Shown: positions 3,001 to 55,600, counted from the first letter of the stretch. The stretch is DNA of 64,000 nt from Ophelia neglecta (GCA_965285935.1 OZ260667.1:40362001-40426000); one strand, 5' to 3'. The notes: generated by a model from the sequence alone, not told the origin. Made by a program: numbers and translations.

Positions 3001-6000
3001 TCTAACAATATATTTTTGCTAATATTTATCTGAATTAAGATTTTTTTCTAATTACCTAAGTGCTGCAGTCAGATGATATTATTGAGTGATTTTGGTATTT
3101 ACAGTCAATTTACTACTTGCCTTTTGCAGGGTGTGTTCATTTCTCAAGTGAGGGAGGATGGGCCTTCAGGTAGAGGCGGTTTGATGGTCGGTGATAAGGT
3201 GCTCTCTGTCAACGGCAACACGCTAGTGAACGCCGACCACCATCGAGCAGTGGCCGTTCTCAAAGACGCTGGCAATGATGTCACCATGATAGTGGCCCGA
3301 GACAGGCCAAGTATCTCTCCCATCACTACAAACCCAGCATCGCCAAATAAGGTCATCAACAATCTGGCAGCAGGCATGGAAATACAGGCGGAGGTGAGAA
3401 CACATTGCCATCGTCCCTGCAGTGACGGGGTTAATGAACCCATGGGCGAAAATCAGGAAAAAAAACAGAAATATCAGATTGACTGGGGATAACAAGATAT
3501 TTTTTTAGAAATATTATTTCCATCACTTGAAAAAGCAGATACAATTTATTGTTTGAAATGTGAATTGTACAGGTTTACTTTAATGTAAAGTCATCTTTTT
3601 TTATCAGACCATTGCGACCACTCTCAACCGTGATGACAATGGTTTAGGTTTCAGTATAGCAGGTGGCGGAGGGTCCACTCCTTTCAAGGGATCTGAAGAG
3701 GTAAGGATCTGATCAGATTACTGTTTAAATTAGCAGAGTTCTCTATTCAAAGGTGAATAAATTCTTGCTGAATAAAATAGGAGGCAACTAAGTTCGTAAT
3801 GGTGTGAATAGCCTGACAATGCCACTCACTTCCTTAGTCAAAAACACCCTAGTTTTTAGTTCTGTGCATTTAAATGACATTTTAATTAACTAAGTACTGT
3901 TCTGACAAATCATCTTGTGAACATACACTCTCATGTCAGTTATGTATTTTCTATATCTAAACACAAAATTGAAGTATAGTTCTCACACTACATGTTAATT
4001 AGAGGCACATCAAAACCTATTTATTTACCCTTGGCCCTCAAAAGAATAACTAGCTTTAAAACTAATGATTGTACCTTTTTATGTTACTTGTTAATATTAA
4101 TTCCTTAACAATTCATTAACCATAGCCACTTATTCATTTGTCACGTTGATCATCCAGATGACAAACTCTGTAATGGTTAGTACCTATGTGGTATCTGACT
4201 AGGTGGTTTGTGTTAACATATGTCTTTGTGTCTGTGTTATAGGCACTGCATGTTTTTATTTGTTACTCTACCGTCTACAAACCACTTGTTCTGTATTTTA
4301 TATGTCGTCAAGTTTAAATTTTCTGTCTGATTTGTATCTTTGTTAACTAGTATTTGAGTGTACCACCATCCAGTCTATCAAACATTTCTACCTGAATTAC
4401 AAAAATTATCGAAAACTAAGGTTGGTCAAGTCTCTACCTGCTTCCAACAAAGATCATAAAAACATACTGCCAAGTCGGCGCCGTCAGTCTCCTTTTTTTA
4501 GTCTCTGGAAATGTAGGCCTTCCAGGTGTGTCGCCATCCTTTTAAAATTGAAATCAAGGCTTACCTGTGATAGATATCATCTCTGAATAATTGTGGCTCT
4601 GACAGTACTAGTATCTTGCCAGCGTTCTTTCTGGACTGTGTTCTGTTGTGTGTCTTGACCTCAGTCCTTTATCAGGCCATGCACCCTGTTATGGTATCTG
4701 CACAGAACATTGAAAATAAATATTACATATGTTGTGCAGCAACTTTGCAATTAATATTAAGTGCATATTAATATTAAGATCAGGCAAATTAATATTTGCT
4801 CTATTCTGAATATAAGACAAAAGGAGTCATTTATAGCAGAACAGAGGTTATATACTCTTTTGTATCTCTGCGAACTTTATAGTTGGGGACTTGTGCTTGC
4901 TGGCTAAATTGAGGAGACATTGAAATGTCAAATCATACAAAAAAGTGGCTCCTATCCTCATTTTTTATACTCTTAATAGGCTATATAGTAAAAAAGGGTA
5001 TTTTGATGTGCCATATTTCTGTGTCATGTTTCATCTGTTTTACAGCTTTCTCCTCCCTGTCAGGAGGGTTCAATATAAATAACGTGTACTGTAAGTGCCC
5101 TGCTCCAAGTGGCCAGGTCCTCCTGAGTGTTAACCTGGCTGAGCACTCATCAGGCCCTGCTCACCATGTAAACAAGGCCATAATACTCAGACCCTTTCCA
5201 TGGCTCTTGTGTTATCAATCATGTCATTCTGGCAAAACCTAGCTTTCTATCATTTATAAAATAAGCTATTGATTTGGGTGTAAGGTACTTTTCATTTTAT
5301 TACTATCCTCTAAGGAGTCCAGATAAAAATGAGTGTGATTATAGATATGGTATTGTTGGCAGGTTAGTTTCTTGGGGGGCTTTTAATAACCATTTCTTGC
5401 TGTTGTTGCTGTCTTTTTGTCCTGAAAGCAATTCTGCTATTCTTGTTACATAGGAAGTCAGGTCAGAGCACTCCTCCTAAATTGATGTATCTAAAACAAT
5501 CATTTCTAGGAATATGCTTAAAAAATAGTATGCCAACAGTAGGATACATAAAGCATTTATAAAATTACCTTTTCAACGATAAAAATTTTCAGTATATGAA
5601 TTGGTATGGGAATTATGTGATGCCTTTTTTCTCTTTAGTCGATATACATATCACGAATTAATGAAAACGGAGCGGCATACAAGGACGGAAAACTCCAAGT
5701 CGGGGATAGGATTATATCGGTTTGTTAAAGCTACATGAATACTCAATATATATATTGTTGCATAATTTGTCATTCCTTTAAGCCAGATAAATATAGTCTT
5801 AACTCAGGTATGGAACATATATCATTACATTCCAAACACTTAACTCCTTTAAAAACAGTTAGTGTAGATCACATGCTGTAATTGAATGTTTATTTACCGA
5901 CTGACCTGTAATTTCAGATCAATGGTGTAGACATAACCGATGCCAGACACGACCAGGCAGTAGCACTGCTGACTAGCGGTGAGAAGAAAATAACACTGGT

Positions 6001-24000: not shown

Positions 24001-27000
24001 GAGGATAACTCCCCTTCCACCAGCTCAATGGCAGGCCCATAACACCCAGGATTACTGCCCTCCAACCAGCTCAATAGCAGGCCGTTAACAGCCCTGGATT
24101 ACTGCCCGCCTACCAGCTCACTGGCAGGCCCCTTACAGCCCAGGATTACTGCCCTCCAACCAGCTCACTAGCAGGCCTTTAACAGCTGAGGATTACTGCC
24201 CTCCTATCAGCTCACTGGCAGGCCCCTAACAGCCCTGGATTACTGCCCTCCCACTGGCAGGCCCCTAACAGCCTAGGATTACTGCCCTCCTACCAGCTCA
24301 CCGGCAGGCCTCTTACAGCCGAGGATAACTCCCCTTCCACCAGCTCACTGGCAGGCCTCTTACAGCCGAGGATAACTCCCCTTCCACCAGCTCACTGGCA
24401 GGCCTCTTACAGCCGAGGATAACTCCCCTTCCACCAGCTCACTGGCAGGCCTCTTACAGCCGAGGATAACTCCCCTTCCACCAGCTCAATGGCAGGCCTC
24501 TTACAGCCGAGGATAACTCCCCTTCCACCAGCTCACTGGCAGGCCTCTTACAGCCGAGGATAACTCCCCTTCCACCAGCTCACTGGCAGGCCTCTTACAG
24601 CCGAGGATAACTCCCCTTCCACCAGCTCACTGGCAAGCCTCTTACAGCCGAGGATAACTCCCCTTCCACCAGCTCAATTGCAGGCCCCTAACAGCCTAGG
24701 ATTACTGCCCTCTCACCGGCTCACTGGCAGGCCTCTTACAGCCGAGGATAACTCCCCTTCCACCAGCTCACTGGCAGGCCTCTTACAGCCGAGGATAACT
24801 CCCCTTCCACCAGCTCACTGGCAGGCCTCTTACAGCCGAGGATAACTCCCCTTCCACCAGCTCACTGGCAGGCCTCTTACAGCCGAGGATAACTCCCCTT
24901 CCACCAGCTCACTGGCAGGCCTCTTACAGCCGAGGATAACTCCCCTTCCACCAGCTCACTGGCAGGCCTCTTACAGCCGAGGATAACTCCCCTTCCACCA
25001 GCTCACTGGCAGGCCTCTTACAGCCGAGGATAACTCCCCTTCCACCAGCTCACTGGCAGGCCTCTTACAGCCGAGGATAACTCCCCTTCCACCAGCTCAC
25101 TGGCAAGCCTCTTACAGCCGAGGATAACTCCCCTTCCACCAGCTCAATTGCAGGCCCCTAACAGCCTAGGATTACTGCCCTCTCACCGGCTCACTGGCAG
25201 GCCTCTTACAGCCGAGGATAACTCCCCTTCCACCAGCTCACTGGCAGGCCTCTTACAGCCGAGGATAACTCCCCTTCCACCAGCTCACTGGCAGGCCTCT
25301 TACAGCCGAGGATTACTCCCCTTCCACCAGCTCACTGGCAGGCCTCTTACAGCCGAGGATAACTCCCCTTCCACCAGCTCACTGGCAGGCCTCTTACAGC
25401 CGAGGATAACTCCCCTTCCACCAGCTCACTGGCAGGCCTCTTACAGCCGAGGATAACTCCCCTTCCACCAGCTCAATGGCAGGCCTCTTACAGCCGAGGA
25501 TAACTCCCCTTCCACCAGCTCAATGGCAGGCCTCTTACAGCCGAGGATAACTCCCCTTCCACCAGCTCACTGGCAAGCCTCTTACAGCCGAGGATAACTC
25601 CCCTTCCACCAGCTCAATGGCAGGCCCATAACACCCAGGATTACTGCCCTCCAACCAGCTCAATAGCAGGCCGTTAACGGCCCTGGATTACTGCCCGCCT
25701 ACCAGCTCACTGGCAGGCCCCTTACAGCCCAGGATTACTGCCCTCCAACCAGCTCACTAGCAGGCCTTTAACAGCTGAGGATTACTGCCCTCCTATCAGC
25801 TCACTGGCAGGCCCCTAACAGCCCTGGATTACTGCCCTCCCACTGGCAGGCCCCTAACAGCCTAGGATTACTGCCCTCCTACCGGCTCACTGGCAGGCCC
25901 CTAACAGCTTGGGATTACTGCCCTCCCACCGGCTCACTGGCAGGCCCCTAACAGCTTGGGATTACTGCCCTCCTACCGGCTCACTGGCAGGCCCCTAACA
26001 GCTTGGGATTACTGCCCTCCCACCGGCTCAATGGCAGGCCCCTAACAGCCTAGGATTACTGCCCTCCCACAGGCTCACTGGCAGGCCACTAACAGCCGAG
26101 CATTACTGCCCTCCCACCAGCTCACTGGCAGGCCCCTAACAGCCCAGGATTACTGCCCTCCAAACATAGCGGTCAGCTAAGCGTTCCCCCTAGGAAATAG
26201 ACTGCCCAACTCCTGTTTTAATGCTACCAGGTCTTGTTCTTTGCCAGCTCACAGAGCTTGTCCCACTGGCTGTATTGTTCTGATTGTTTGAGACCTCCTG
26301 TCATTGTGACTCAGTTCTCCCGACATCACTAATTACCCTGTCTATCATCAGTCAGACAGCTGAGCACAGAGAACAAAGCCCTTGATGCCGTCTGTGCCTG
26401 GTTTTAATGTCTGGGTGGGAAATGTGCAGTGATAAATTATCATTGAAATGGTATTATTTCCTAAAAAAGACTAGAGGAATTCCAAGAATTGAAATTTTAA
26501 AAACCTCTCATGTTAGCAATATTGCCACACCACTTCTTGTATTGATAAGATAATATATTTGTTGTTTGATTTACCTCCCTAACTTATGGGCTGACAATAC
26601 ATCCTTTGATAAGAATTCCATCATGATCATTGCAAAGACCAAAAATTACTGTTACAAGTACCTGAGTACATTGTGTTCAACTTATTAATTACATGTGCTT
26701 GTATGCACTGAATATAGAACATGTTTACCTTGAATGGTAAAAGGCCAAGAATTCTACCATGTGAAGTGTGACATGTAGTTTAGCTAATGCAGGTATTTAT
26801 GTCCTTTACAGGTTAGATAAGACATGACTTGATCAGGACAGGATCATGAGGACACATGAAAGTGTTTGGGGACTGATAAGCTTACCTTATATTGAAAGTT
26901 GACAAGCGCATTTCTGTACCAGTAATCAAGCTTCTAGTATACTGATCCTTATGGTTGTAACACTACCTGCTTATTATGTGTGTAGTGTCCAATACTGTGT

Positions 27001-37810: not shown

Positions 37811-40800
37811 ATGGACCCCAATATGGGGAAAGTTATCCTAGTAATCTGGCTGACACTGCTGCATCTGATAGCTATGGTATGTATGAAGAAATGAATTGTT
37901 TCAACATAAGAATACTTGGTAGTCCAATTATTTTGAATATTTCTATTCTGGCACTAATAGAAGAAGTGTTGTTTAATAGTGGACTTTCTATAAGCTGATT
38001 AGTCCTTCTCTCCTGATGAACTGACTAAAAGCCACAGAAAATGGACATGATAGTTGTCATGTACATGTATAGGGGCTGAGTTACCATTCAACTAAAAATA
38101 CTACATTATACTATGATAAATGGTATTTGGAGGGTTGGTTAATAAAGCGACCTAATAGTCTCCCTGTACTAAGGTCTCAACTGGCAATAAGAAAATCCAT
38201 ATCCTTCTTTCTACCTTTTAGTCTAGTTGTAAACTTATTTGTAAGATAAGTGTTTGCTATAAATTCATCTCCTTCTGAATTTCATAGTTAGTGAATCATT
38301 AGAAAAATGGCTATGACTAAGAAAGTAACTATAAAAAGCCAGTCTGTTTGTTGGCAACAGAGTTCCTGTTTAAAGATACTCTCAGGCTTTGTGTGGAACT
38401 TATAATGAAATGTGTTATTCTGGGTTTTTCAATAATGTTAGGCTCAGAAACCAACTGATTTTGCTTATCATTGCACAACATAGAGTGGTTATATAGGGAA
38501 GAAAAAAGGAATACTTTGTGTCATATATAAACCGGCCATCCATTAAGACTACTACTGGAAATCACGTATATCATATTACTGGCAATCCTTTGTAACTTAT
38601 TACTGGCAATCCTTTGTAACCTTTTACTGGCAATGCCCTGTAACCTTTTACTGGCAATTCCTTGTGACTTAACATATTACTGGCTATTCCATGTAACTTA
38701 TTACTGGAATATTACTGGCAAACACTTGTAACTCATTACTGGCAACCTTGTGTTACTTATTACTGGCAATCCCTTGTAAACTATTAATAGCAATTCCTTG
38801 GAACTTAATTTATTACTGGAATTTCCTTTTAACTTATTACAGGCCATGCCTTTTAACTTATTACTGGCAATCCTTGTAACTCATTACAGGATATCCCTTA
38901 ATTGTAACATTTTACTGACAATCATTGGAAACATATTACTAAATGGAAAGTCAATTTTAGGTAGTTAACTTTCAAGGGCCTCTACATTAAGAACTACATA
39001 TAATAAAGCGATGCACAGTTTAAAATAGGAATATTGGTATATTTTAACAAATATAGCAGTTTACCAGTATGTATACATGTACATGTACATGAACAGATGT
39101 ACAGACTAGTACTGTTATTATATCACACCACTATTATAGGTCAGCACATGTATATAATATGTAAAAGTTCCAAAGGCAGTTCTTTTTTATGGCAAAAATT
39201 GACAGACTGTGCGCAATTTATTCTTATTCAATTCAACCGACTTTTGGCAATTTTTCATTTTATTTTCAATCACCACAAATGCTTGCTCGTGTGATCAATA
39301 CTATGAAAGCACTAAGCAAAGTGGTCATACTATAGACAAACTGTGCCTTTACAATCCATGGTAATGAATGGCTTAGTGATTCAATCTTTAAAGCTACTAG
39401 GTAAAGTAGCTAAGTAGAGTATGTAAGAACTTTATCTAAATCAATCAAAATTATATGTAACAAGCTAAGAGTGATACAAACTGAAAGTTAAAGGAAAGAA
39501 AATGGTCGTCAAAGTCATAATAACCCCGGTATATAATTCTTTCTAAAGCCATTTATAGTCCTTTTCTGACAAATTAAAAAAAATGTAGCATGTTTTTGTA
39601 AGTAGTACTGTGTACAATGTGATTCTTTTGTATATTAACCAGGGGTCTGCAGCTTATAATTGCTCTTTATGTCAAATGGAGGGATGTGCTGTGTGCAACA
39701 CAGAGGGAGATACTAGTATCTGCAATGAATGTTGTGAAGGATATTACAAAATACCAATGACAGCACCTACTGGTAAGTAAACAAGGCCCATAGCTTTAGT
39801 GTCCTTGGTTTTATTATTTATTGATTTAGTATAAAGATAACTATATAGTAGGCGTTACAAAATGGAGAACGTTTGTTTACATTATTTTGTCATTCCTTAG
39901 GTGACACTGCTTTGAAGTGCATGTTAAAAATGAACATTCACTGAGTTCAGTAGATTTAAGATAAGATTTTACAGTTAGTTCCTGTATGTAAAGTCTAAAG
40001 TTCTACTAATATAATAGAAAAAATGCACGTAAACAATTTCAGATTTTTCAACAACTTATTTTCCTTCCTCTCCTGGACCAACTTCTGTGACTTATGCCCC
40101 TAAGACTACTACCCCTGATCCAGGTACCATGTGTGCTCCCTCCTGAACTACTCACCACAGGAACTAGTGTTCTAAAACTCAAATAAACTAACTTGCATTC
40201 AAATTGATATTTCTGCACCAAAATATCCATTTGAGAGCAGACATAATGCTTTTATACATTGCACAAACTAATGATAACTTAACATACCTGTATATACCTC
40301 ATTTAGGTGAGACTGATGGTCAGTTAATTGCTTAATGGGCTCAACTGTGCTTCAAAATAAAGGGCTCTTTGCAGCAATTACAACTTGATAGTAACAGTTT
40401 TGCTTTTCATCCTTTCATGTACATTTTTATACAATACCTTTTTGCTGAGATCTGAATTTAGGGTTTCATGTTTCAGCGGTGTCGAGCAGTTTAACCACTT
40501 CTGCAAATATATAATGAGACCTTCTAACAGTGATAAACATGTTTTATCAAGAAGAAAATAATAAATAATTAACCCACTACTGTAAACTGGATGACTAATA
40601 CGTTTTAAAAAAACATTTAGTTAATTATTGTAATTTGACCACGAGATAGTACAACTGTTATGGTAAACAATTAATGATCTGTTTAAAAAAAATTCTAAAA
40701 CTTCATTTCTGAATTTTTCAGTCACACAATCAAGCATCACCACAGTACCTTCAACCACAACGAAGCCTCCTCCCACCGTCACACAATCATCAGCTGTAAT

Positions 40801-43011
40801 CTCGAGGGGGCAAGATAATCCACCTGGTTTAAGTTCATACCAGTCGTGCATGCTGTGCTCAACTAGTGTGTCAAATTGCACCAAATGTACAAACGCAGCA
40901 CAAGGTGTGAATTGTTTAGCTTGTTCAATTGGAACTTACCTTCACAATGGACAATGTGAAAGTAGTTGTCCAACAGGCTATATACCTGACTCGGGGACTT
41001 GTAAGGAAGATGACAGTTCTTCTCGTTTAGCTATCATAATTGGATGCAGCGTGGCAGGTGCTGTTGTCCTTGTGATACTTCTAATTCTCCTTGTGTGCTG
41101 TTTGAAAAGGAGAAAGAAGCCACCACAACCAACACCTGCACTGCCAAGGAAAGAGGAATTGGATAGAATGAGGGTAAATTATTTTAATATTTTATCATTC
41201 AAAATGGCCAAATTCCTTTTGATGCCACTCACAAGAATATAATATTGCTTTTAATTCTAATTCATTATCAATTTTCTTTTGTACATGTATTATGAAATAT
41301 ATAATATATAATAAGCTGCAATAACCTTTTATCTGTAACAGTCTTGATAAAACATGGAATGAATTGAATTTGATATTTAAAAGATGAATTGTATTACCCA
41401 ATCCTTGGGTTGGGGGGGGGGGGGGGAGGGGTCTTCCAACCCCTTGAGAGAGGGAGCCCCCAACCCCTAGAGAGAGGGGTCCCCTAAACCCTGGAGGGAG
41501 GGATCCCCTTCAAGTTGATTTATTAGATTATGATCTGTTCCTTCTTCTAATGGGACAAATGGAAAACTGTGAAATGGCAGTTACAGCAAGAAGGTATTTT
41601 TAATTTAAGCATGTTTACTCCCTTGTGGGGGGGCAATGAATTGTGAACGGGGTAAATAAAAGGTAAATACCTAGCTGGGAAGTTAAGATAGCTGGCGTTT
41701 GGGGGGGGGGGAGGTGAGTGGGGGAGGAAATTATCTAATAAAATAAGTTAAAGGATACACCCTTCATTTTTACTAAGTTTGAGCCATACATTATTTTTTG
41801 AATTTTATAATTGAAGCCTTGTAACTGAACTTTGTTATGTTTTTATGCAGTCTATGTTCAAGTGTCCACTAGACATATTCACCATTCCTTTTCATAGGAG
41901 AGGGGCCTGGGTTTTATCAATGCCTTGTTTCTCTTGCCTTGTGTCTTTGTTTCTCAATGATTCCTGTTGACAACAGACAGGCTGATTTGGTTATTCCCGA
42001 TGACTTTTTTAACTACTGGTTGTTATCACTGTGCATTAATTCTTTTGCCAGCACACAGACACATTACCATTGTCTGATAGTCGCCGTCTTCCATCTGCAG
42101 TAATCCAAGAGGTGAGCTTAAATTTTCTCTTAGTTAATTTTTCCCCAAATATTTATCGTACAATCAGTATCTGAGTGTCTTATATTTTTTCTAATGCAAT
42201 CTTTACTTTTACATATACAAGGACAGCTTGATATCTAAATTTATACAACATTCACATACATGTACATGTATTATTATTGTCTCAACTCATAAAAACTTAT
42301 TGCCCAATGTATACATAAATGCTGGTATTTTTCCAGCAAGTAAACCATAATGTTGAGGAAGAGCACCCTCAGGGAAGGGCGTCTGCCAGGAATGGAAAAC
42401 CAGGTCCACCTAGTCACAGCAGAGTCGTATCTGACCCACAGTTATATGAGAACCCTGATGATGACGACCCTGAAGCCTTGTATGTCAACAATGAAGATGA
42501 CCCTGGGCCACCATCTCATGCATCATATGTTCAGGTGCACAAAAATATAAGTCCACTTGCACCTAGGAGTGTTAAAGACAAAAACAATGCAGGCGCTGTA
42601 GCCAATCGTGGTAAAGAACCAAAAATACCTAAGTATGAAAACACAAAAAAGGAACTAGAGGCATTTCATAAAAACAAAGGAAAAGGGACCAAAGATTATG
42701 TTAATGTAAGTGATACACTAGCAGAATATCGTGAAAGCAAGAATCCTCCTGCACCTAGTCATAAAGCACCCCCCCAAACGACAGCTCATAAGATGCCTCC
42801 CAAAGGACATGCCAGTCCTCTCAAACATGGATATGTTAATGATTCAGTGACAACAACGAATATGAGCAAATATGATAAACAAGTTCCAATTGGAGGAGGG
42901 GTTGAGGATGAATATATAACAAAAGACCAACAACATCGTAGCTATTACAATGTTCCTACTAACAAGGGTCCAGGATCGTCTTATTATAATGCTAAATCAG
43001 GGTATAAGTAA
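37811..43011 (+). CDS. Uncharacterised type I membrane protein (~487 aa): signal peptide, two furin-like Cys-rich repeats, mucin-like insert, TM helix, YxN-rich disordered cytoplasmic tail
   Basis: Phase-consistent exons: 37811-37876 (MDPNMGKVILVIWLTLLHLIAM, donor GTATGT; alternative in-frame ATGs at 37793 and 37823), 39643-39772 (GSAAYNCSLCQMEGCAVC...CNECCEGYYK), 40043-40123 (S/T/P-rich), 40722-41173 (S/T-rich, CMLC...CPTGYIPDSGTC, TM LAIIIGCSVAGAVVLVILLILLVCCL-KRRKK), 42052-42111, 42337-43011 (TAA). Confidence 0.85.
38574..38940. repeat. 24-bp minisatellite, ~14 diverged copies
   Basis: Unit ATTACTGGCAATCCTTTGTAACTT; period 24 (38581 to 38605); lies in the intron after the signal-peptide exon. 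Confidence 0.9.
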
Positions 43012-43074: not shown

Positions 43075-43080
43075 AATAAA
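43075..43080 (+). terminator. Candidate polyadenylation signal of the membrane-protein gene
   Basis: AATAAA 64 nt after the stop codon. Confidence 0.45.
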
Positions 43081-44923: not shown

Positions 44924-47900
44924 TTAAAGAAAAGATGGCCTTCTACTCCAGTCAAATTTGTTAGTAAAAGTCCATTGTTTTGTGTCATCAGTAATGTCAC
45001 AGTCTCCTATCTGAACATCTCCATCTTTTCTTGGTTTCCCTAAACATAACATACCCCTTGTCGTTCTGTATCCTAAAACAAGCGTTTTACCAGCTTGCCT
45101 CAGATATGTCCATTGCATTGCCTTGCTACATGTTTGTAGCTGTAAAGAACTCCTCTCAATCTTGACACATAAATCAGAGCCGATGTTTTTCAATAACCCT
45201 GCTCTATTTATTGTAAAATATTGTGACCGTTCAAGGTCCACACAGTCTACCAAAGTGAAGGTATTATTGTGCGGTACTAGAGTCAAGCATTGAGATGTGG
45301 CCAAGCTTTTCATCTGCCCATAATATACAGCATCATGATCCGGTAGAGGCATTTCAGGAATGACATGTTTCATAAACCACCTGAAACTTTTACATTTTAA
45401 TTTGTCTTTGAGCTTCAGCCTCTCTCTCAGTGACTCCACATTCACATCCACATCCAACTGTCTCGGAGCTTGGGCATAGAAAAATCCTTTGTATTCTTGT
45501 AAGACCACTTCTGCAGTCCTAACAGAGTTGTGGTATATGACACTCTTGGCATCCCCCTGGAAAGAGTATGGGATTCTTTTTCGGAAGATATGTGCCACAC
45601 GCGAACATGGTAGAATCTCAACCCTTCCACCACATTGCCAGACACGGAAAGAAAATTCCACGTCATCCACACCCCATATTTTCATATCTGGGTCAAGCAG
45701 GCCTAAGTGCATGAAAAACTTTCTCCTGAGGGAAAATGCTCCAGCTGGCATTATAGGGGATATTATTGGCTGACTTTCCACACTTCTGCCATCTTTCATG
45801 GCTTTGGGGATGTCTTTCCAGTAGAACTCCAGGTTCCAGTTGAACCCTCCATGGTAGCCGATGAATGTGCCCTTAATGTTGAAGTCCTCATCGGAGATGG
45901 TGTCCAGTAGAGACATTACCACTGTATCTGGATGGATGTTTATGTGACTGACGATCGGCTCTAGCCAGTGCTGGTTTACTTCTACATGAGAATCTATGTA
46001 GGAAATGATGTGGCCACGAGCATAAGAGGCTCCGATGATACGAGCCCTGGTGGAGCCTTCTCTCTGTACAGTCCGGATCAAGCGAACCTGGCAATGACAT
46101 GTTATAAAAGAAGTATTAGGCCTATAGGAAGTTAATAACATGGAGTTAATGCTACTTTTATAGTGTTCTTGTATGGTTTATGGCATTCGGTGTCCATTAA
46201 AATGAGTATTTTGGAATTTTTGTAAACCAAATTAAGGGGCTGGATCAAACACATGAACATGTTCCCAACCCTCCCCCACCCTCACCCCCTTTAGACTGAT
46301 GATCACCATTGTTACGGGTGGGGACCCACCATGACTATTTAGAAGAAGAAAAAAAATAATTAAATATGAAACTGAGACCCAAAATAATTTGAACATGTCT
46401 ATAAATAATACAAAATAATAACTTTAAAATAAGTAAACCTAGGTACAGCAATACCATATTTCAATTGCCTTCTTCGTATTGGTTCCCTCCACTCATTACT
46501 CTTTACTGTGAACTAAAACTTAACCTTTAAATACAAACCACTGACAATATGACACAGATATATGTATCCCAGTGAAAGCAATGGCACAAGAAAGTTTAAT
46601 AAATAACTTATTTCCGTGGTGGTCCACACAAATTATACACCTGGTGACCATCAGGTCTAAAGTTAGTCCCCAAAATGCAGCATAATGCAACAAAACATAT
46701 ATATACATTGAAACCTGTCTAATCAGGTCAGTCAAGGGAATGGGAAAAAACCTGACCACATTATGTAGGTGACCTTAATGAGCAGGTCAGTTAACACAAG
46801 CATAAATTGGTATCAGGCTATTAATTAGTGACCTCAGTGGGCAGGTGACCTTATTACACAGGTGACCACAAACACAGGTTTCACTGTATAAGAAAAAAAA
46901 AAAAATCCAATTTCAAACGTAGTGCTAAAGTATGCCGAAAGGTACAATGACCAAAGGTACTACTTAGACTATAAGTTTAACAATGCCCCAAGCCATATAC
47001 CATCTCCTCCCAAAGGCCCACTGTTTAGCAGGACAGGATGCAATTACGTACTGTACTTGGGCAAAGCCCTCCAGACCGATCACGTTTCATGAAGAGCGCG
47101 TTCCATGAAGAGCAGAGCACGTTTCATGAAGAGCACGTTTCGTAATTAGGTCTGCTTTATTCAGTCTGCTATCAAAATTCGTTCCAATAAGCAATGTTTA
47201 AGACAGGGTCCCAGTTACATTATTAAGGGTCTGGTTAAAGAAGTTTGTATACGCAAGATAATTAAATTTAGGAAAGCATAGCTGAAAATGGAATGATTCT
47301 AGTTGGCAGTGTGATAAGAGGAATGTAGCAATTTGATATAAACACATCAAGTAATTAAATATTAACTATAATAACTAAATGTTGACCTATGGAATTCACG
47401 AGAGTCTTACAGGTCCATATTCATAATTATGGCAGCATGTAGTTTTTACCAAATAACCATTAAATATAATTGTCATGGTGTAATGATTTCTTCACCTTAT
47501 GCAATGTGCATATTGCCTTTTCCAGTTCTTCTTTTAGACAAGTCAAATCGTCTGTGCTCTTGTCGTCAACTAACAGTACCTCCAGCAATAGATCTGGGTT
47601 GGATCTCTCCAACACAGAATGGAGCGTTCTCAGCAGTGTAGAAAGTTGTTCATTGTGGAACGGTATGACCACGCTGACTGATGTCGAATCATTCCTGCTC
47701 AAATTAAACCTCTCTTGTTCTTTTATACAGACCTTGGGCCTGGTGTCCCAGATATCCCGATTGACCGCAATTTCGTTACCGATCTTATCGTTGTAGGAAA
47801 ATGTACCATGACATTTTCCGCGATTTGTTACATAAAGTTTTCCGTTTTTATCTTCTTTTGCCCAGTTTCTGTAAATACCAATGTGCTTTGCGGTGTCCGT

Positions 47901-48218
47901 GAGAAATACATCCCCGTGAAGAGCGGCAAGGAACTGATATTCTTTGAATGTTTCTTCCACTCCCTCGCCGCTGAGGAGAATGCTACTGACGGTCGGAGCA
48001 CCGAGCCGAACAACGTTTCCCCATTCTAAGCTATATTTGAATATCACAAGTGTCCATGTAAGCAATAAAAATGTTTTCTGTAATAACAACACCCTGTACT
48101 TCAGTTTTCGGTTTCGGAGACAGCCATTTATCCAATCAAATGAATATGAATTAGATCTACCAAGGAAATGGCTTGTCGTGTTCTCTAAAATCATAATATG
48201 GTGTCTTCTCCAAGCCAT
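44924..48218 (-). CDS. GALNT: Divergent polypeptide N-acetylgalactosaminyltransferase-family protein (GT27 plus ricin-B lectin), ~628 aa, two coding exons
   Basis: Exons 48218-47496 (donor AAG|GTGAAG) and 46087-44924 (acceptor CAG|GTT), phase 0. N-terminal hydrophobic anchor; motifs SVVIPFHNE..TLLRTLHSVL, LLVDD, DSHVEVN..WLEP, GGFNWNL.F.W, FRVWQCGG..ILPCSRVAHIFRK..PYSF, CKSF.WF; C-terminal three-repeat ricin-type domain with Q.F/QW motifs. The start codon is uncertain and no isoform number can be assigned. Confidence 0.92.
46706..46886. mobile_element. Tc1/mariner (pogo/Tigger-like) MITE in the GALNT intron
   Basis: TA-CATTGAAACCTGT ... ACAGGTTTCACTG-TA; internal repeated CAGGTGACC motifs. 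Confidence 0.75.
47081..47142. repeat. Short tandem repeat CACGTTTCATGAAGAG x~3.5
   Basis: Directly visible 16-20-bp periodicity. Confidence 0.75.
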
Positions 48219-48249
48219 AGTTGTATTTGTTTTGCGTTTAAACAATTAT

Positions 48250-52600: not shown

Positions 52601-55600
52601 AACCTTTAACAAGTGTATTATGTTGACTGCTCCGTTGGATGGCGCGACCACCTAAACCCATTCAGTGCCTACAGAAAGCGCAAATGACCACTGAAGTTAC
52701 CAAATTACCGCATTGCCCATCACCAAGCCGTACACATCGGCGAATATTACCTACGTCCTTGGGACGTACATGCACTTTTATTTTAACGTCCTTGGTCATT
52801 TTCGGGAGTATTTTATATACTGGGACGCCGTAAATGAAGACACTGGGCAATAATTATGATTTTACAATAATTGCTTCACACTTGTATTTTTCAATTGTTA
52901 TGGTTTTTCTTAAAGATGTCATCAGTGTTGCACAAACGATTGCCACCAATTTTCATCTTAAAATGTACAGAGATGTCAATGTCAGCATTGTGAATCCAAA
53001 GGTAAAGAATGACAATTTCCTAATATGTTTTACTTGAACATTTCTTGGCAGACTAGAATATTTTATGAAAATTCAAAATAGATGGTGTGAGTGCCAAGTT
53101 TCCAAGTTGTAGTGTACTCATTGTTTGTACTTTTAGGATGTAGCCTGTGACTTGGTAGAACTGACTTATAAAGATCAGTATTTTAGCAGGGCAGACATGT
53201 GGAGGCTGAGAACAAGTTTGGTAAGATTTGTCCCTCACTCCTACACACCAACAGTGCTGATTATAAAGAGATTTAGATTTTGTTGTAGGTTTAGCCGTAT
53301 TAAATTCAGACAGAACAAAAACATACATGTATATGTGTTAATGTTGTCATTTCAGATAGGAACCTGCATGTATCTGTCTCAGAAGATTTGCTATGCTGAG
53401 ATGAGGGCCCAGGTGGAGGAGCTGTGGTCTAAGGGGGAGAAAGTCAAGTGTGGGTGTATAACAGAAGACACTAGGGTGGGTCCTCAAAACAGCATTTATT
53501 ACTTGTTAATTTGGTGTTGATCACAGGCAGTTGTTTGGTAATTTATACAGTATCATAGGGTCAATAAGCACATTGTAAGAGTGTCCCCTTCTGTGTTTCA
53601 ATTCTCCCATATGTTATAAATTCTGTGGGGTGGCGTGCTTCTGTGCCAACATGTCAGACTCCCATGCTATGCCCCCCCCCCCCCAGACATCCTTTTGGAC
53701 AGGTGGTAGCCCAGATATGGCTGCTTGGGGGATGTGAAGGCCCTAGGGCCCAAGATTGTGTGTGGCTAGCAGCTAAGTTGCCCCTTGTGTGTATATTGGT
53801 GGGTTATATAAACAGCAGGACTGTGAGCCCTTGAATTGCAATAAAGTTGTTGGGAACATGAAAATTTCTTTGTAAAGTGCTTTTGTACTGCATTTTTAAT
53901 GTAGAATACTGAGCACCTAATAAATATTAGTATTAATTGATTAATTAGCTGCTAGTTTCCTGTATGGGAAGAATTATTTGCTGAAATCTAAAAGATATAC
54001 AGACTTTCCTTGAGTGTTTACTCCCTTCGGGTATTGTATGTTGATAGGGTGGCACACATATATCAAGATGATGATATCTTATACATACATAGCTACTCTT
54101 TAGCCAAATTTCCCCTGTCTGGAATTCCCTTCCACTCTTTAGAAATCACTTCACCTGCCTGTGATTCACATCCTCTCTCTCTAGAACCACATCACTTGCC
54201 TGTGTTTCATGTCCTCCCTCTAGAAACACATCACCTGCCTGTGTTTTATGTCCTCTCTCTAGAATCACATCAAATACCTGTGTTATGTCCTCTCTCTAGA
54301 ATCTCATCACCCACCTGTGTTTCATGTGCTCTCTCTAGAATCACATCACTTGCCTGTGTTTCATTTTCTCTCTCTAGAATCATATCACATGTCTGTGTTT
54401 CACTTCCTCTAGAATCACATCACCTGCCTGTGTTTCAAGTCCTCCCTCTAGAATCACATCAAATGCCTGTGTTTCATGTGCTCTCTCTAGAATCATATCA
54501 AATGCCTGTGTTTCATGTGCTCTCTCTAGAATCACATCATTTGCCTGTGTTTCATTTTCTCTCTCTAGAATCATATCACATGTCTGTGTTTCACGTCCAC
54601 CCTCTAGAATTAAATAACATGCCTGTGTTTTTTATGTCCTCTAGAATCACAGTACCTGCCTGTGTTTCAAGTTCTCCCTCTAGAATCACATCAAATGCCT
54701 GTGTTTCATGTCCTCTCTTTAGAATCATATCACCTGCCTGTGTTTCATGTCCTCTCTCTAGAATTGCATCACCTGCCTGTGTTTCATTTGCTCTCTCTAG
54801 AATCATATCACTTGCCTGTGTTTTATGTGCTCTCTCTAGAATCACATCATCTGCCTGTGTTTCACATCCACTCTCTACAATCATCACCTGCCTGTGTTTC
54901 ACATCCTGTCTCTAGAGTCACATCCAATATATGTGATACACATCCACTAGCTAGACACATCCACTGTCTGTGATACACATCCACTAGTTAGACACATTCA
55001 CTGTCTGTGATACACATCCACTAGTTAGACACATCCAATGTCTGTGATGAACATCCACTAGCTAGACACATCCACTGTCTGTGATACACATTCACTAGTT
55101 AGACACATCCACTGTCTGTGATACACTTCCACTAGTTAGACACATCCACTGTGTGTGATACACCTCCACTCCGTATGAGACTGTGATTGTCATTTGGTCA
55201 GTACATTTCGATCCACATTGTCTCTCTGGCAGGTGACTTTCAGGTCCTCAACAGCCCAAGTCAACATATTCATCCAGATGAGCTCTGAGATGTGGGAGTT
55301 TGACAACTATGGAGATTTGTATTTTGAGAAAGCCGTTGATGGTTTCCTGGTTGACCTGTTTGGTCAATGGAAAGAGTTAAACTGTAACCATGATGTCACC
55401 ATAACCATGTTCTCTAGAACATTCTACGATGCTAAGTCTATTGGTACGTACTGTTTCATTTCATCACTGTTGCATTCTGGTCATAAAGACAAATATGTTT
55501 TTGATACAAATGACTTGTATGTTAATAATAATGATTTTATTGGTCTGTTCATTTATTAATGGTCACAAAAGAATAAGGCACATGTGCTATGTATTACAGT

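Follow-up and report, generated by a model that had tools for sequence, protein, structure and literature searches.

To our knowledge, scaffolds at the membrane through which phosphorylated tyrosines recruit Grb2 multivalently are known almost only from vertebrate immune cells, and LAT, NTAL (LAT2) and LAX1 are among the closest described systems for the gene considered here. The ligand that marks binding to Grb2-family SH2 domains is a phosphotyrosine with Asn at the second position after it (pYxN), and Trp121 of the Grb2 SH2 domain forces the turn that selects this Asn. LAT-like molecules have been reported absent from amphioxus (PMC5431462) and from ascidians (PMC12582321), so that a convergent analogue outside the chordates would be of some interest. 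A second point of comparison is MUC1, in which YTNP and YHPM sites control internalisation and the juxtamembrane cysteines are palmitoylated (PMC5039420). Here we describe a gene at 37811-43011 on the plus strand of a 64,000-nucleotide stretch of Ophelia neglecta DNA (GCA_965285935.1, OZ260667.1:40362001-40426000; this whole stretch is called the window, and plain coordinates refer to it). The locus is a real, single-copy gene of five exons for a type I membrane glycoprotein of ~467 residues. We assign a probability of about 0.5 to the reading that this glycoprotein is a lineage-restricted, kinase-less phosphotyrosine docking receptor, the tail of which would recruit several molecules of Grb2/Drk.

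A five-exon gene with a tyrosine-rich tail

The gene comprises 467 codons plus a stop, its introns all run from GT to AG, and the intron phases (0, 1, 1, 0) are consistent throughout; all features of the gene given below lie on the plus strand. Exon 1 (37811..37876) encodes 22 residues that resemble a signal peptide, with the hydrophobic core VILVIWLTLLHLIA and a phase-0 donor (ATG/GTATGT), and its start is the sole upstream ATG that combines a hydrophobic core (hydropathy 3.1) with a phase-0 GT donor. Exon 2 (39643..39772) holds a first Cys-rich unit, CxxC-x4-CxxC-x9-CxxCC-xGYY, which amounts to half a furin-like (FU) repeat and includes one N-glycosylation sequon. It is followed by a mucin-like linker rich in Ser, Thr and Pro (exon 3, 40043..40123, phase 1/1) and by exon 4 (40722..41173), in which a further mucin-like linker, a full FU repeat, a stalk, a transmembrane helix and a segment of CC, KRRKK and a Pro-rich stretch succeed one another. 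Exon 5 (42337..43011) encodes 224 residues of cytoplasmic tail and the stop. A hexamer that by its sequence resembles a polyadenylation signal (AATAAA, 43075..43080) lies 64 nt past the stop. Three public runs contain the stretch, all of them DNA of one sample; since their contigs continue through the introns, they are uninformative on expression. The searches and fold predictions made with this protein used its exons singly.

The cytoplasmic part of the protein measures ~247 residues, 23 of them juxtamembrane and 224 from exon 5. Half of the 14 tyrosines in the tail stand in a YxN context, namely YENP (Y37), YVNN (Y49), YENT (Y100), YVNV (Y121), YVND (Y166), YYNV (Y203) and YYNA (Y216). When the tail was shuffled 100,000 times with its composition preserved, the mean number of YxN was 1.19, and seven or more occurred at P = 2e-5. 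An origin of the sites from internal repeats was considered and rejected, because only PGPPSH recurs (twice) in the tail. A Pfam search of all exons (E <= 5) assigned no domain, no kinase family and no LAT-type family to the tail, and AlphaFold2 predicted no fold for it (mean pLDDT 47.8, pTM 0.13, from an alignment two sequences deep). An earlier reading of this DNA from its sequence alone (the sequence-only reading) had described a complete single-pass protein with a disordered, non-catalytic tail of ~265 residues carrying 14 tyrosines, seven of them YxN. The gene does look complete, the tail is as described apart from its length, and we find the same seven motifs in an excess that is real. 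No evident PLC-gamma-type site was found in the tail.

Between the signal peptide and the membrane lie ~190 residues of FU repeats and mucin-like linkers. Ser, Thr and Pro together make up 65% of exon 3 and 56% of the start of exon 4, and the linkers, which sum to ~67 residues without tandem repeats, are probably O-glycosylated. The full FU repeat (40847..40999, residues 42-92 of the exon-4 translation) was matched by the Pfam family Furin-like_2 at E 0.001 and 19.7 bits, under the 28-bit cut-off, and the scan of all exons gave no family above cut-offs, no SEA domain and no TSP1 match. When the Protein Data Bank was searched with exon 4 (phmmer), the second FU repeat of R-spondin-2 was matched at E 4.3e-5, and both the cysteines and a C-P-x-G-[YF] element fall into register. 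In the AlphaFold2 model of exon 4, beta hairpins occupy residues 52-95 and a helix residues 98-130 (helix pLDDT 65-88). The top Foldseek matches of this model were all FU repeats, from R-spondin, ErbB2 and the insulin receptor, over 34 columns with a root-mean-square deviation of 1.6-2.2 Å and a probability of 0.99-1.0, at a weak E of ~0.09 and with modest model confidence. Other matches, such as those to sodium-channel beta-2, PRIMA1 and syndecan, were driven by the transmembrane segment and were set aside as hydrophobic-segment noise. That segment (41027..41104, exon-4 residues 102-127) is a helix of 26 residues, with a hydropathy of 3.17 in its best 19-residue window. It ends in Cys-Cys (41096-41101) at the cytosolic end, after which come KRRKK and the Pro-rich, PxxPxK-type motif PPQPTPALPRK (41105..41173). 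The juxtamembrane VCCLKRRKK and the PPQPTPALPRK named in the sequence-only reading are both present in exon 4.

A syntenic orthologue and the conservation of motif cores

The neighbouring gene provided a route to an orthologue. It encodes a polypeptide GalNAc-transferase (44924-46141 and 47460-48245, minus strand; Glycos_transf_2 plus ricin lectin), which lies 1.9 kb from the mucin-like gene in a tail-to-tail arrangement. On a contig that carries a relative of this enzyme with 63% identity (ENA ERZ25069296, locus L039), the opposite strand holds an orthologue of the window gene, tail-to-tail as in the window, and the linkage to the transferase is retained there (L039:9114-11170). Its recognisable pieces are a 231-residue tail exon, an exon with mucin, FU and transmembrane segments and, further upstream, a mucin exon and a Cys-rich exon; in tblastn searches the tail matched at E 8e-20 and the transmembrane exon at E 3.5e-12. 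The order of five exons is that of the window gene and the splice phases are again 0, 1, 1, 0. The counterpart of exon 2 is entered in phase 0 and left in phase 1, that of exon 3 (phase 1/1) is longer than in the window, and a small signal-like first exon with the donor TGG/GTAAGT lies ~500 bp upstream. A search of the 762-Mb genome to which the window belongs found the tail and exon 4 in single copy, with weak matches only at transmembrane and juxtamembrane segments of other receptors, and since it recovered the window copy alone, L039 does not come from that genome. The comparison with L039 is the best support at hand for the gene model as predicted, including the junction between the transmembrane exon and the tail.

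Over 193 aligned columns the two tails are 39% identical, and six of the seven YxN sites are kept in position. The site at Y37 (42445..42453) is not kept, there being no Tyr in L039. At Y49 (42481..42489), which has an acidic context, L039 has YTNG followed by EDD; at Y100 (42634..42642) it has YVNV, and at Y166 (42832..42840) HGYIND. The remaining three are identical in L039: DYVNV at Y121 (42697..42705), SYYNV at Y203 (42943..42951) and YYNA at Y216 (42982..42990). Among the kept sites Tyr and Asn(+2) are invariant and position +1 varies (V/T, E/V, V/I). Two tyrosines outside YxN are conserved as well (YDxxVP and EY[IV]xxD), whereas Y64, Y131 (to F) and Y223 are not. The L039 tail has 6 YxN among its 12 tyrosines (shuffle P = 2.3e-4) and contains 32 D+E and 35 K+R. 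Next to the membrane, one Cys (C125) and the basic cluster (as KRKRR) are kept and the PxxPxK motif is lost. The FU repeat is shortened in L039 (Furin-like_2 18.2 bits), which leaves a ligand-binding role of this repeat uncertain. The sequence-only reading had proposed to ask whether YxN motifs are conserved while the spacers between them diverge; in the one species available for comparison, this is the pattern that we observed.

The same reading had called the protein an orphan, which was too strong a word, given the syntenic orthologue and libraries that contain nothing closely related to the species. As a search control, the neighbouring GalNAc-transferase found a best library relative of 63% identity, the best named match being from Capitella teleta; annelid proteins are thus in the libraries but no close relative of the species is, so that a fast-evolving tail could well be missed. 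A phmmer search with the tail against 1.84 billion representative proteins gave 0 matches. For a biased, disordered tail this blank is weak evidence of absence, because phmmer missed even the L039 orthologue. Word-indexed searches yielded no relative with exon 4, and with a two-species tail profile only the L039 protein itself; the ESM Atlas feature search gave no usable match and a scan of JGI metagenomes with the tail profile no relative. Walking along the contigs of three further transferase relatives (P0002, P0011 and P0013) we found no adjoining orthologue, and two others (P0015, from Capitella, and P0006) lie too near contig ends to cover the neighbouring region. At the P0014 locus, which has the same two-exon enzyme, two minus-strand open reading frames downstream could not be read. 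So far, then, the protein family has been seen in two annelid-like genomes only.

Variation between alleles was available from the one sample. Ten coding single-nucleotide polymorphisms (SNPs) were found, three synonymous and seven non-synonymous, and none of them alters the Tyr or Asn of any YxN. Alleles at the Y100 YENT site differ synonymously at K99 and N102 and by T103A, and at Y121 YVNV only flanking residues change (T118A and S125N). A divergent allelic block (42598-42710) has 8 SNPs within 113 nt of the tail exon, all at spacer residues or synonymous positions; two of the three runs carry it as an additional contig, and in the third (X2) it is the sole form assembled. Only one indel was seen in coding sequence, where it removes 3 nt from the mucin linker and keeps the frame; beyond the coding exons six are listed, of 1, 1, 4, 5, 5 and 6 nt. 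This pattern, from a small sample, fits selection on the motif cores with near-neutral spacers. In the introns, three short stretches (38988-39171, 41380-41563 and 42116-42299) reach 3-7 times the contig depth, with many contig joints and loose ends; these are dispersed short repeats, one of which holds a G-run.

Proposed phosphotyrosine docking and its alternatives

In the mechanism that we propose, the protein, which has no kinase domain, would be triggered by clustering or by engagement of a co-receptor, after which either a cytoplasmic tyrosine kinase or a receptor kinase associated with the protein would phosphorylate the tail. Each of the six conserved pYxN sites could then recruit the SH2 domain of the Grb2/Drk encoded in the genome, and the resulting multivalent docking platform at the membrane would feed into Sos and Ras-MAPK signalling, possibly also into endocytosis or actin. 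The juxtamembrane Cys, beside a polybasic stretch, is possibly acylated, and the function of the tail would reside in its conserved tyrosine islands. We infer, rather than observe, that the tail is phosphorylated, that Grb2 binds and that the Cys is acylated, and the same goes for downstream pathway, ligand and cell type. The proposals of the sequence-only reading that Src/Syk would phosphorylate the tail, that the output would be Ras-MAPK and that the protein might act in haemocytes are likewise conjecture, as is the condensate assembly for which it suggested an assay, so that its interpretation is supported in part.

The predicted partner is present. Searching the genome for the Pfam SH2 family gave at least 67 matches, among them a Grb2/Drk SH2 domain spread over two exons (L054, C8:51.99 Mb). 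The half encoded by the second exon aligns with human GRB2 at E 1e-23 and retains a 21-residue stretch that includes the Asn-selecting Trp of KYFLW. The same search brought up two other groups, which we record here. A tandem array of at least 15 SH2 exons at C2:96.40-96.66 Mb (L010-L013, L017, L019, L023, L033-L036) resembles the N-SH2 of SHP-2/Csw-type phosphatases; some of these exons have in-frame stops, and the array is a lineage-specific expansion. SOCS-like genes with an SH2 domain and a SOCS-box-like C-terminus, mostly as intronless open reading frames, lie at C12:55.49-55.53 Mb (L020, L021, L027, L028, L030, L031), on the chromosome-scale contig shared with the window, and at L037.

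Several observations weigh against a Grb2-docking receptor. Src/Syk-type kinases prefer acidic flanks around the Tyr; this tail is net basic, with 31 K+R vs 28 D+E in exon 5, the juxtamembrane stretch adds a further +6 (9 K+R vs 3 D+E), and several of the YxN sites have no acidic flanks. The junction that joins exon 4 to exon 5, and so the membrane helix to the tail, is a prediction from conserved intron phases. With one orthologue, conservation comes down to a single pairwise alignment, which is partly anchored by the motifs themselves. In addition, three of the conserved YxN sites also match the form of a YxxV sorting signal, SH2 proteins of the Grb7/10/14 type are able to read pYxN too, and the SH2 matches of the genome include lineage-specific arrays.

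The first of these ambiguities leads to an account in which the protein is a small transmembrane mucin and its tyrosine motifs serve mainly in trafficking. By binding AP-2, the YxxV sites would control how this surface glycoprotein, protective or adhesive in role, is endocytosed and recycled, and any role of Grb2 would serve internalisation, as reported for MUC1, and not Ras. Val stands at +3 in YVNV, in YYNV and in two YVNV of L039, and the ectodomain consists mostly of Ser/Thr/Pro-rich linker (56-65% S+T+P) that differs in length between the two species. The gene adjoins a mucin-type GalNAc-transferase in both, and in MUC1 itself the YTNP and YHPM sites govern internalisation next to palmitoylated juxtamembrane cysteines (PMC5039420). 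We nevertheless hold this account to be unlikely, as the residue that is invariant is the Asn at +2, which is dispensable for YxxPhi recognition, and as nothing bulky and hydrophobic stands at +3 in YVNN/YTNG, YVND/YIND and YYNA. Moreover, six sites are far beyond what sorting needs, and neither a SEA domain nor a long tandem-repeat mucin domain was found in the Pfam scan or in the linkers.

About equally improbable, in our view, is a genuine phosphotyrosine platform with a different reader, in which the pYxN sites would be bound by another SH2 or PTB protein (Grb7/10/14-like or from a lineage-expanded SH2 family) and the output might be inhibitory or have nothing to do with Ras. Of the SH2 domains that have been characterised, it is those of the Grb2/Gads/Grap and Grb7 groups that are marked by strictly requiring Asn at +2. 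That the Grb2 orthologue retains its specificity loop unchanged speaks for Grb2/Drk, whereas the sheer number of SH2 matches (at least 67, with the SHP2-N-SH2-like array on C2 and the SOCS-like array on C12) leaves other candidates. Two of the conserved tyrosines (YDxxVP and EY[IV]xxD) stand outside YxN, which means that there must be further partners in any case. It is very improbable, finally, that the gene is non-functional as modelled, with a tail that is not spliced to the transmembrane exon, or with a silent or decaying lineage-specific open frame in which YxN is not under selection. Such a view could appeal to the fact that the stretch is present only in DNA runs, all from one sample, to the blank searches of 1.84 billion representatives, of the word index and of the Atlas, and to the high ratio of non-synonymous to synonymous changes among alleles (7:3). 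It would have to account for the retention of five open exons, in the same phases, by two species between which the adjoining enzyme is only 63% identical, for a 230-codon open frame in DNA of 36% GC, for motif cores conserved against diverged spacers, and for a sole coding indel that is in frame.

Wider pattern and comparison with known systems

Polypeptide GalNAc-transferases initiate mucin-type O-glycosylation, and the linkage of such a gene to a mucin-like one may be a coincidence or a functional pairing. Elsewhere in the window we noted a GC-rich island at 24001-26000 (GC 0.59, GC skew -0.35) in DNA that is otherwise 33-45% GC. An open reading frame with a PDZ-like segment (GLMVGDKVLSVNG...) at 3073-3492 (plus strand) probably belongs, as one exon, to a scaffold-protein gene upstream. 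A 301-residue open frame of degenerate tandem repeats in 13-residue units, at 54010-54915 (plus strand), is probably a minisatellite or a repeat-derived frame.

In the same genome there is a second, unrelated single-pass receptor (L004/L006, C7:47133855-47134478, minus strand), a single-copy locus matched weakly by IPT/TIG. Its transmembrane segment resembles that of the window protein, FCCAKKRKK lies at the boundary of the membrane, and 5 of the 10 tyrosines in its strongly acidic, 208-residue tail are YxN (YVNS, YVNS, YVNA, YGNT and YGNC; shuffle P = 3e-4). These sequences hint that the design may recur in the lineage, as part of a wider, undescribed receptor class. A receptor exon at C12:8348920-8349063 (L003, minus strand) shares the exact 9-mer IIIGCSVAG within its transmembrane segment, followed by KRRK and prolines, and its upstream exons are IPT/TIG-like; this could reflect exon sharing or convergence of transmembrane and juxtamembrane segments. 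The general claim that LAT-like hubs evolved independently in annelids, and perhaps in further lophotrochozoan groups, as single-pass proteins with pYxN tails that nucleate Grb2/Drk-Sos on varied ectodomains, seems to us a doubtful extrapolation; the window protein and the IPT/TIG-like receptor would be two cases of it. If it were true, such hubs would take the place of the "missing LAT" that has been noted in invertebrate genomes. A conserved, independent multi-YxN membrane protein in annelids would show a convergent route to the design, and it would offer a natural test case for motif valency on a receptor that bears its own ectodomain.

How, then, does the window protein compare with described families? 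Its ectodomain recalls R-spondin, EGFR and the insulin receptor in the Cys spacing and beta-hairpin stack of exon 4, which match R-spondin-2 FU2, but it has one and a half repeats and no TSP repeat, L domains or kinase. R-spondins are secreted, with two FU repeats and TSP1, whereas the window protein has a transmembrane helix and a cytoplasmic tail; it differs from the FU-containing receptor tyrosine kinases (EGFR and the insulin receptor) in that its tail shows no kinase family and no predicted fold. Disordered segments with several pYxN sites are also found in FRS2, the CH1 region of Shc and Gab/Dos, and YVNV and YYN-x are the forms of the two Grb2 sites of Shc. These proteins are anchored through lipid, PTB or PH rather than being transmembrane with an ectodomain, and they show no homology to the window protein. 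MUC1 shares an O-glycan-type, Ser/Thr/Pro-rich ectodomain, juxtamembrane cysteines followed by a basic cluster, and a Tyr-rich tail whose YxN(P) site, in MUC1, takes part in signalling and internalisation linked to Grb2 (PMC5039420). It differs in its SEA domain and long tandem-repeat domain, in place of which the window protein has FU repeats, and in having one YxN against 6-7 here; again there is no homology.

There remains the likeness to LAT, NTAL and LAX1. All are single-pass and kinase-less, with Cys at the boundary of membrane and cytosol, a long disordered tail, predicted docking of the Grb2 family and, at the level of sequence, multiple YxN of the YVNV and YEN-x flavours. There are also differences. 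No Pfam LAT, LAT2 or LAX family matched at E <= 5 and phmmer gave no match, the ectodomain has ~190 residues of FU repeats and mucin linkers vs a few residues in LAT, and the tail is net basic vs strongly acidic. The tail also lacks an evident PLC-gamma-type site, a single juxtamembrane Cys is conserved, and the gene sits in an annelid-like genome. The label "LAT-like" given in the sequence-only reading therefore does not apply in family terms, given the ectodomain, the tail charge and the absence of LAT sequence similarity. Altogether, the comparison is best read as pointing to a protein that arose independently of vertebrate LAT, unrelated to it by descent, and that would be a functional analogue of LAT, NTAL and LAX and of the MUC1 tail.

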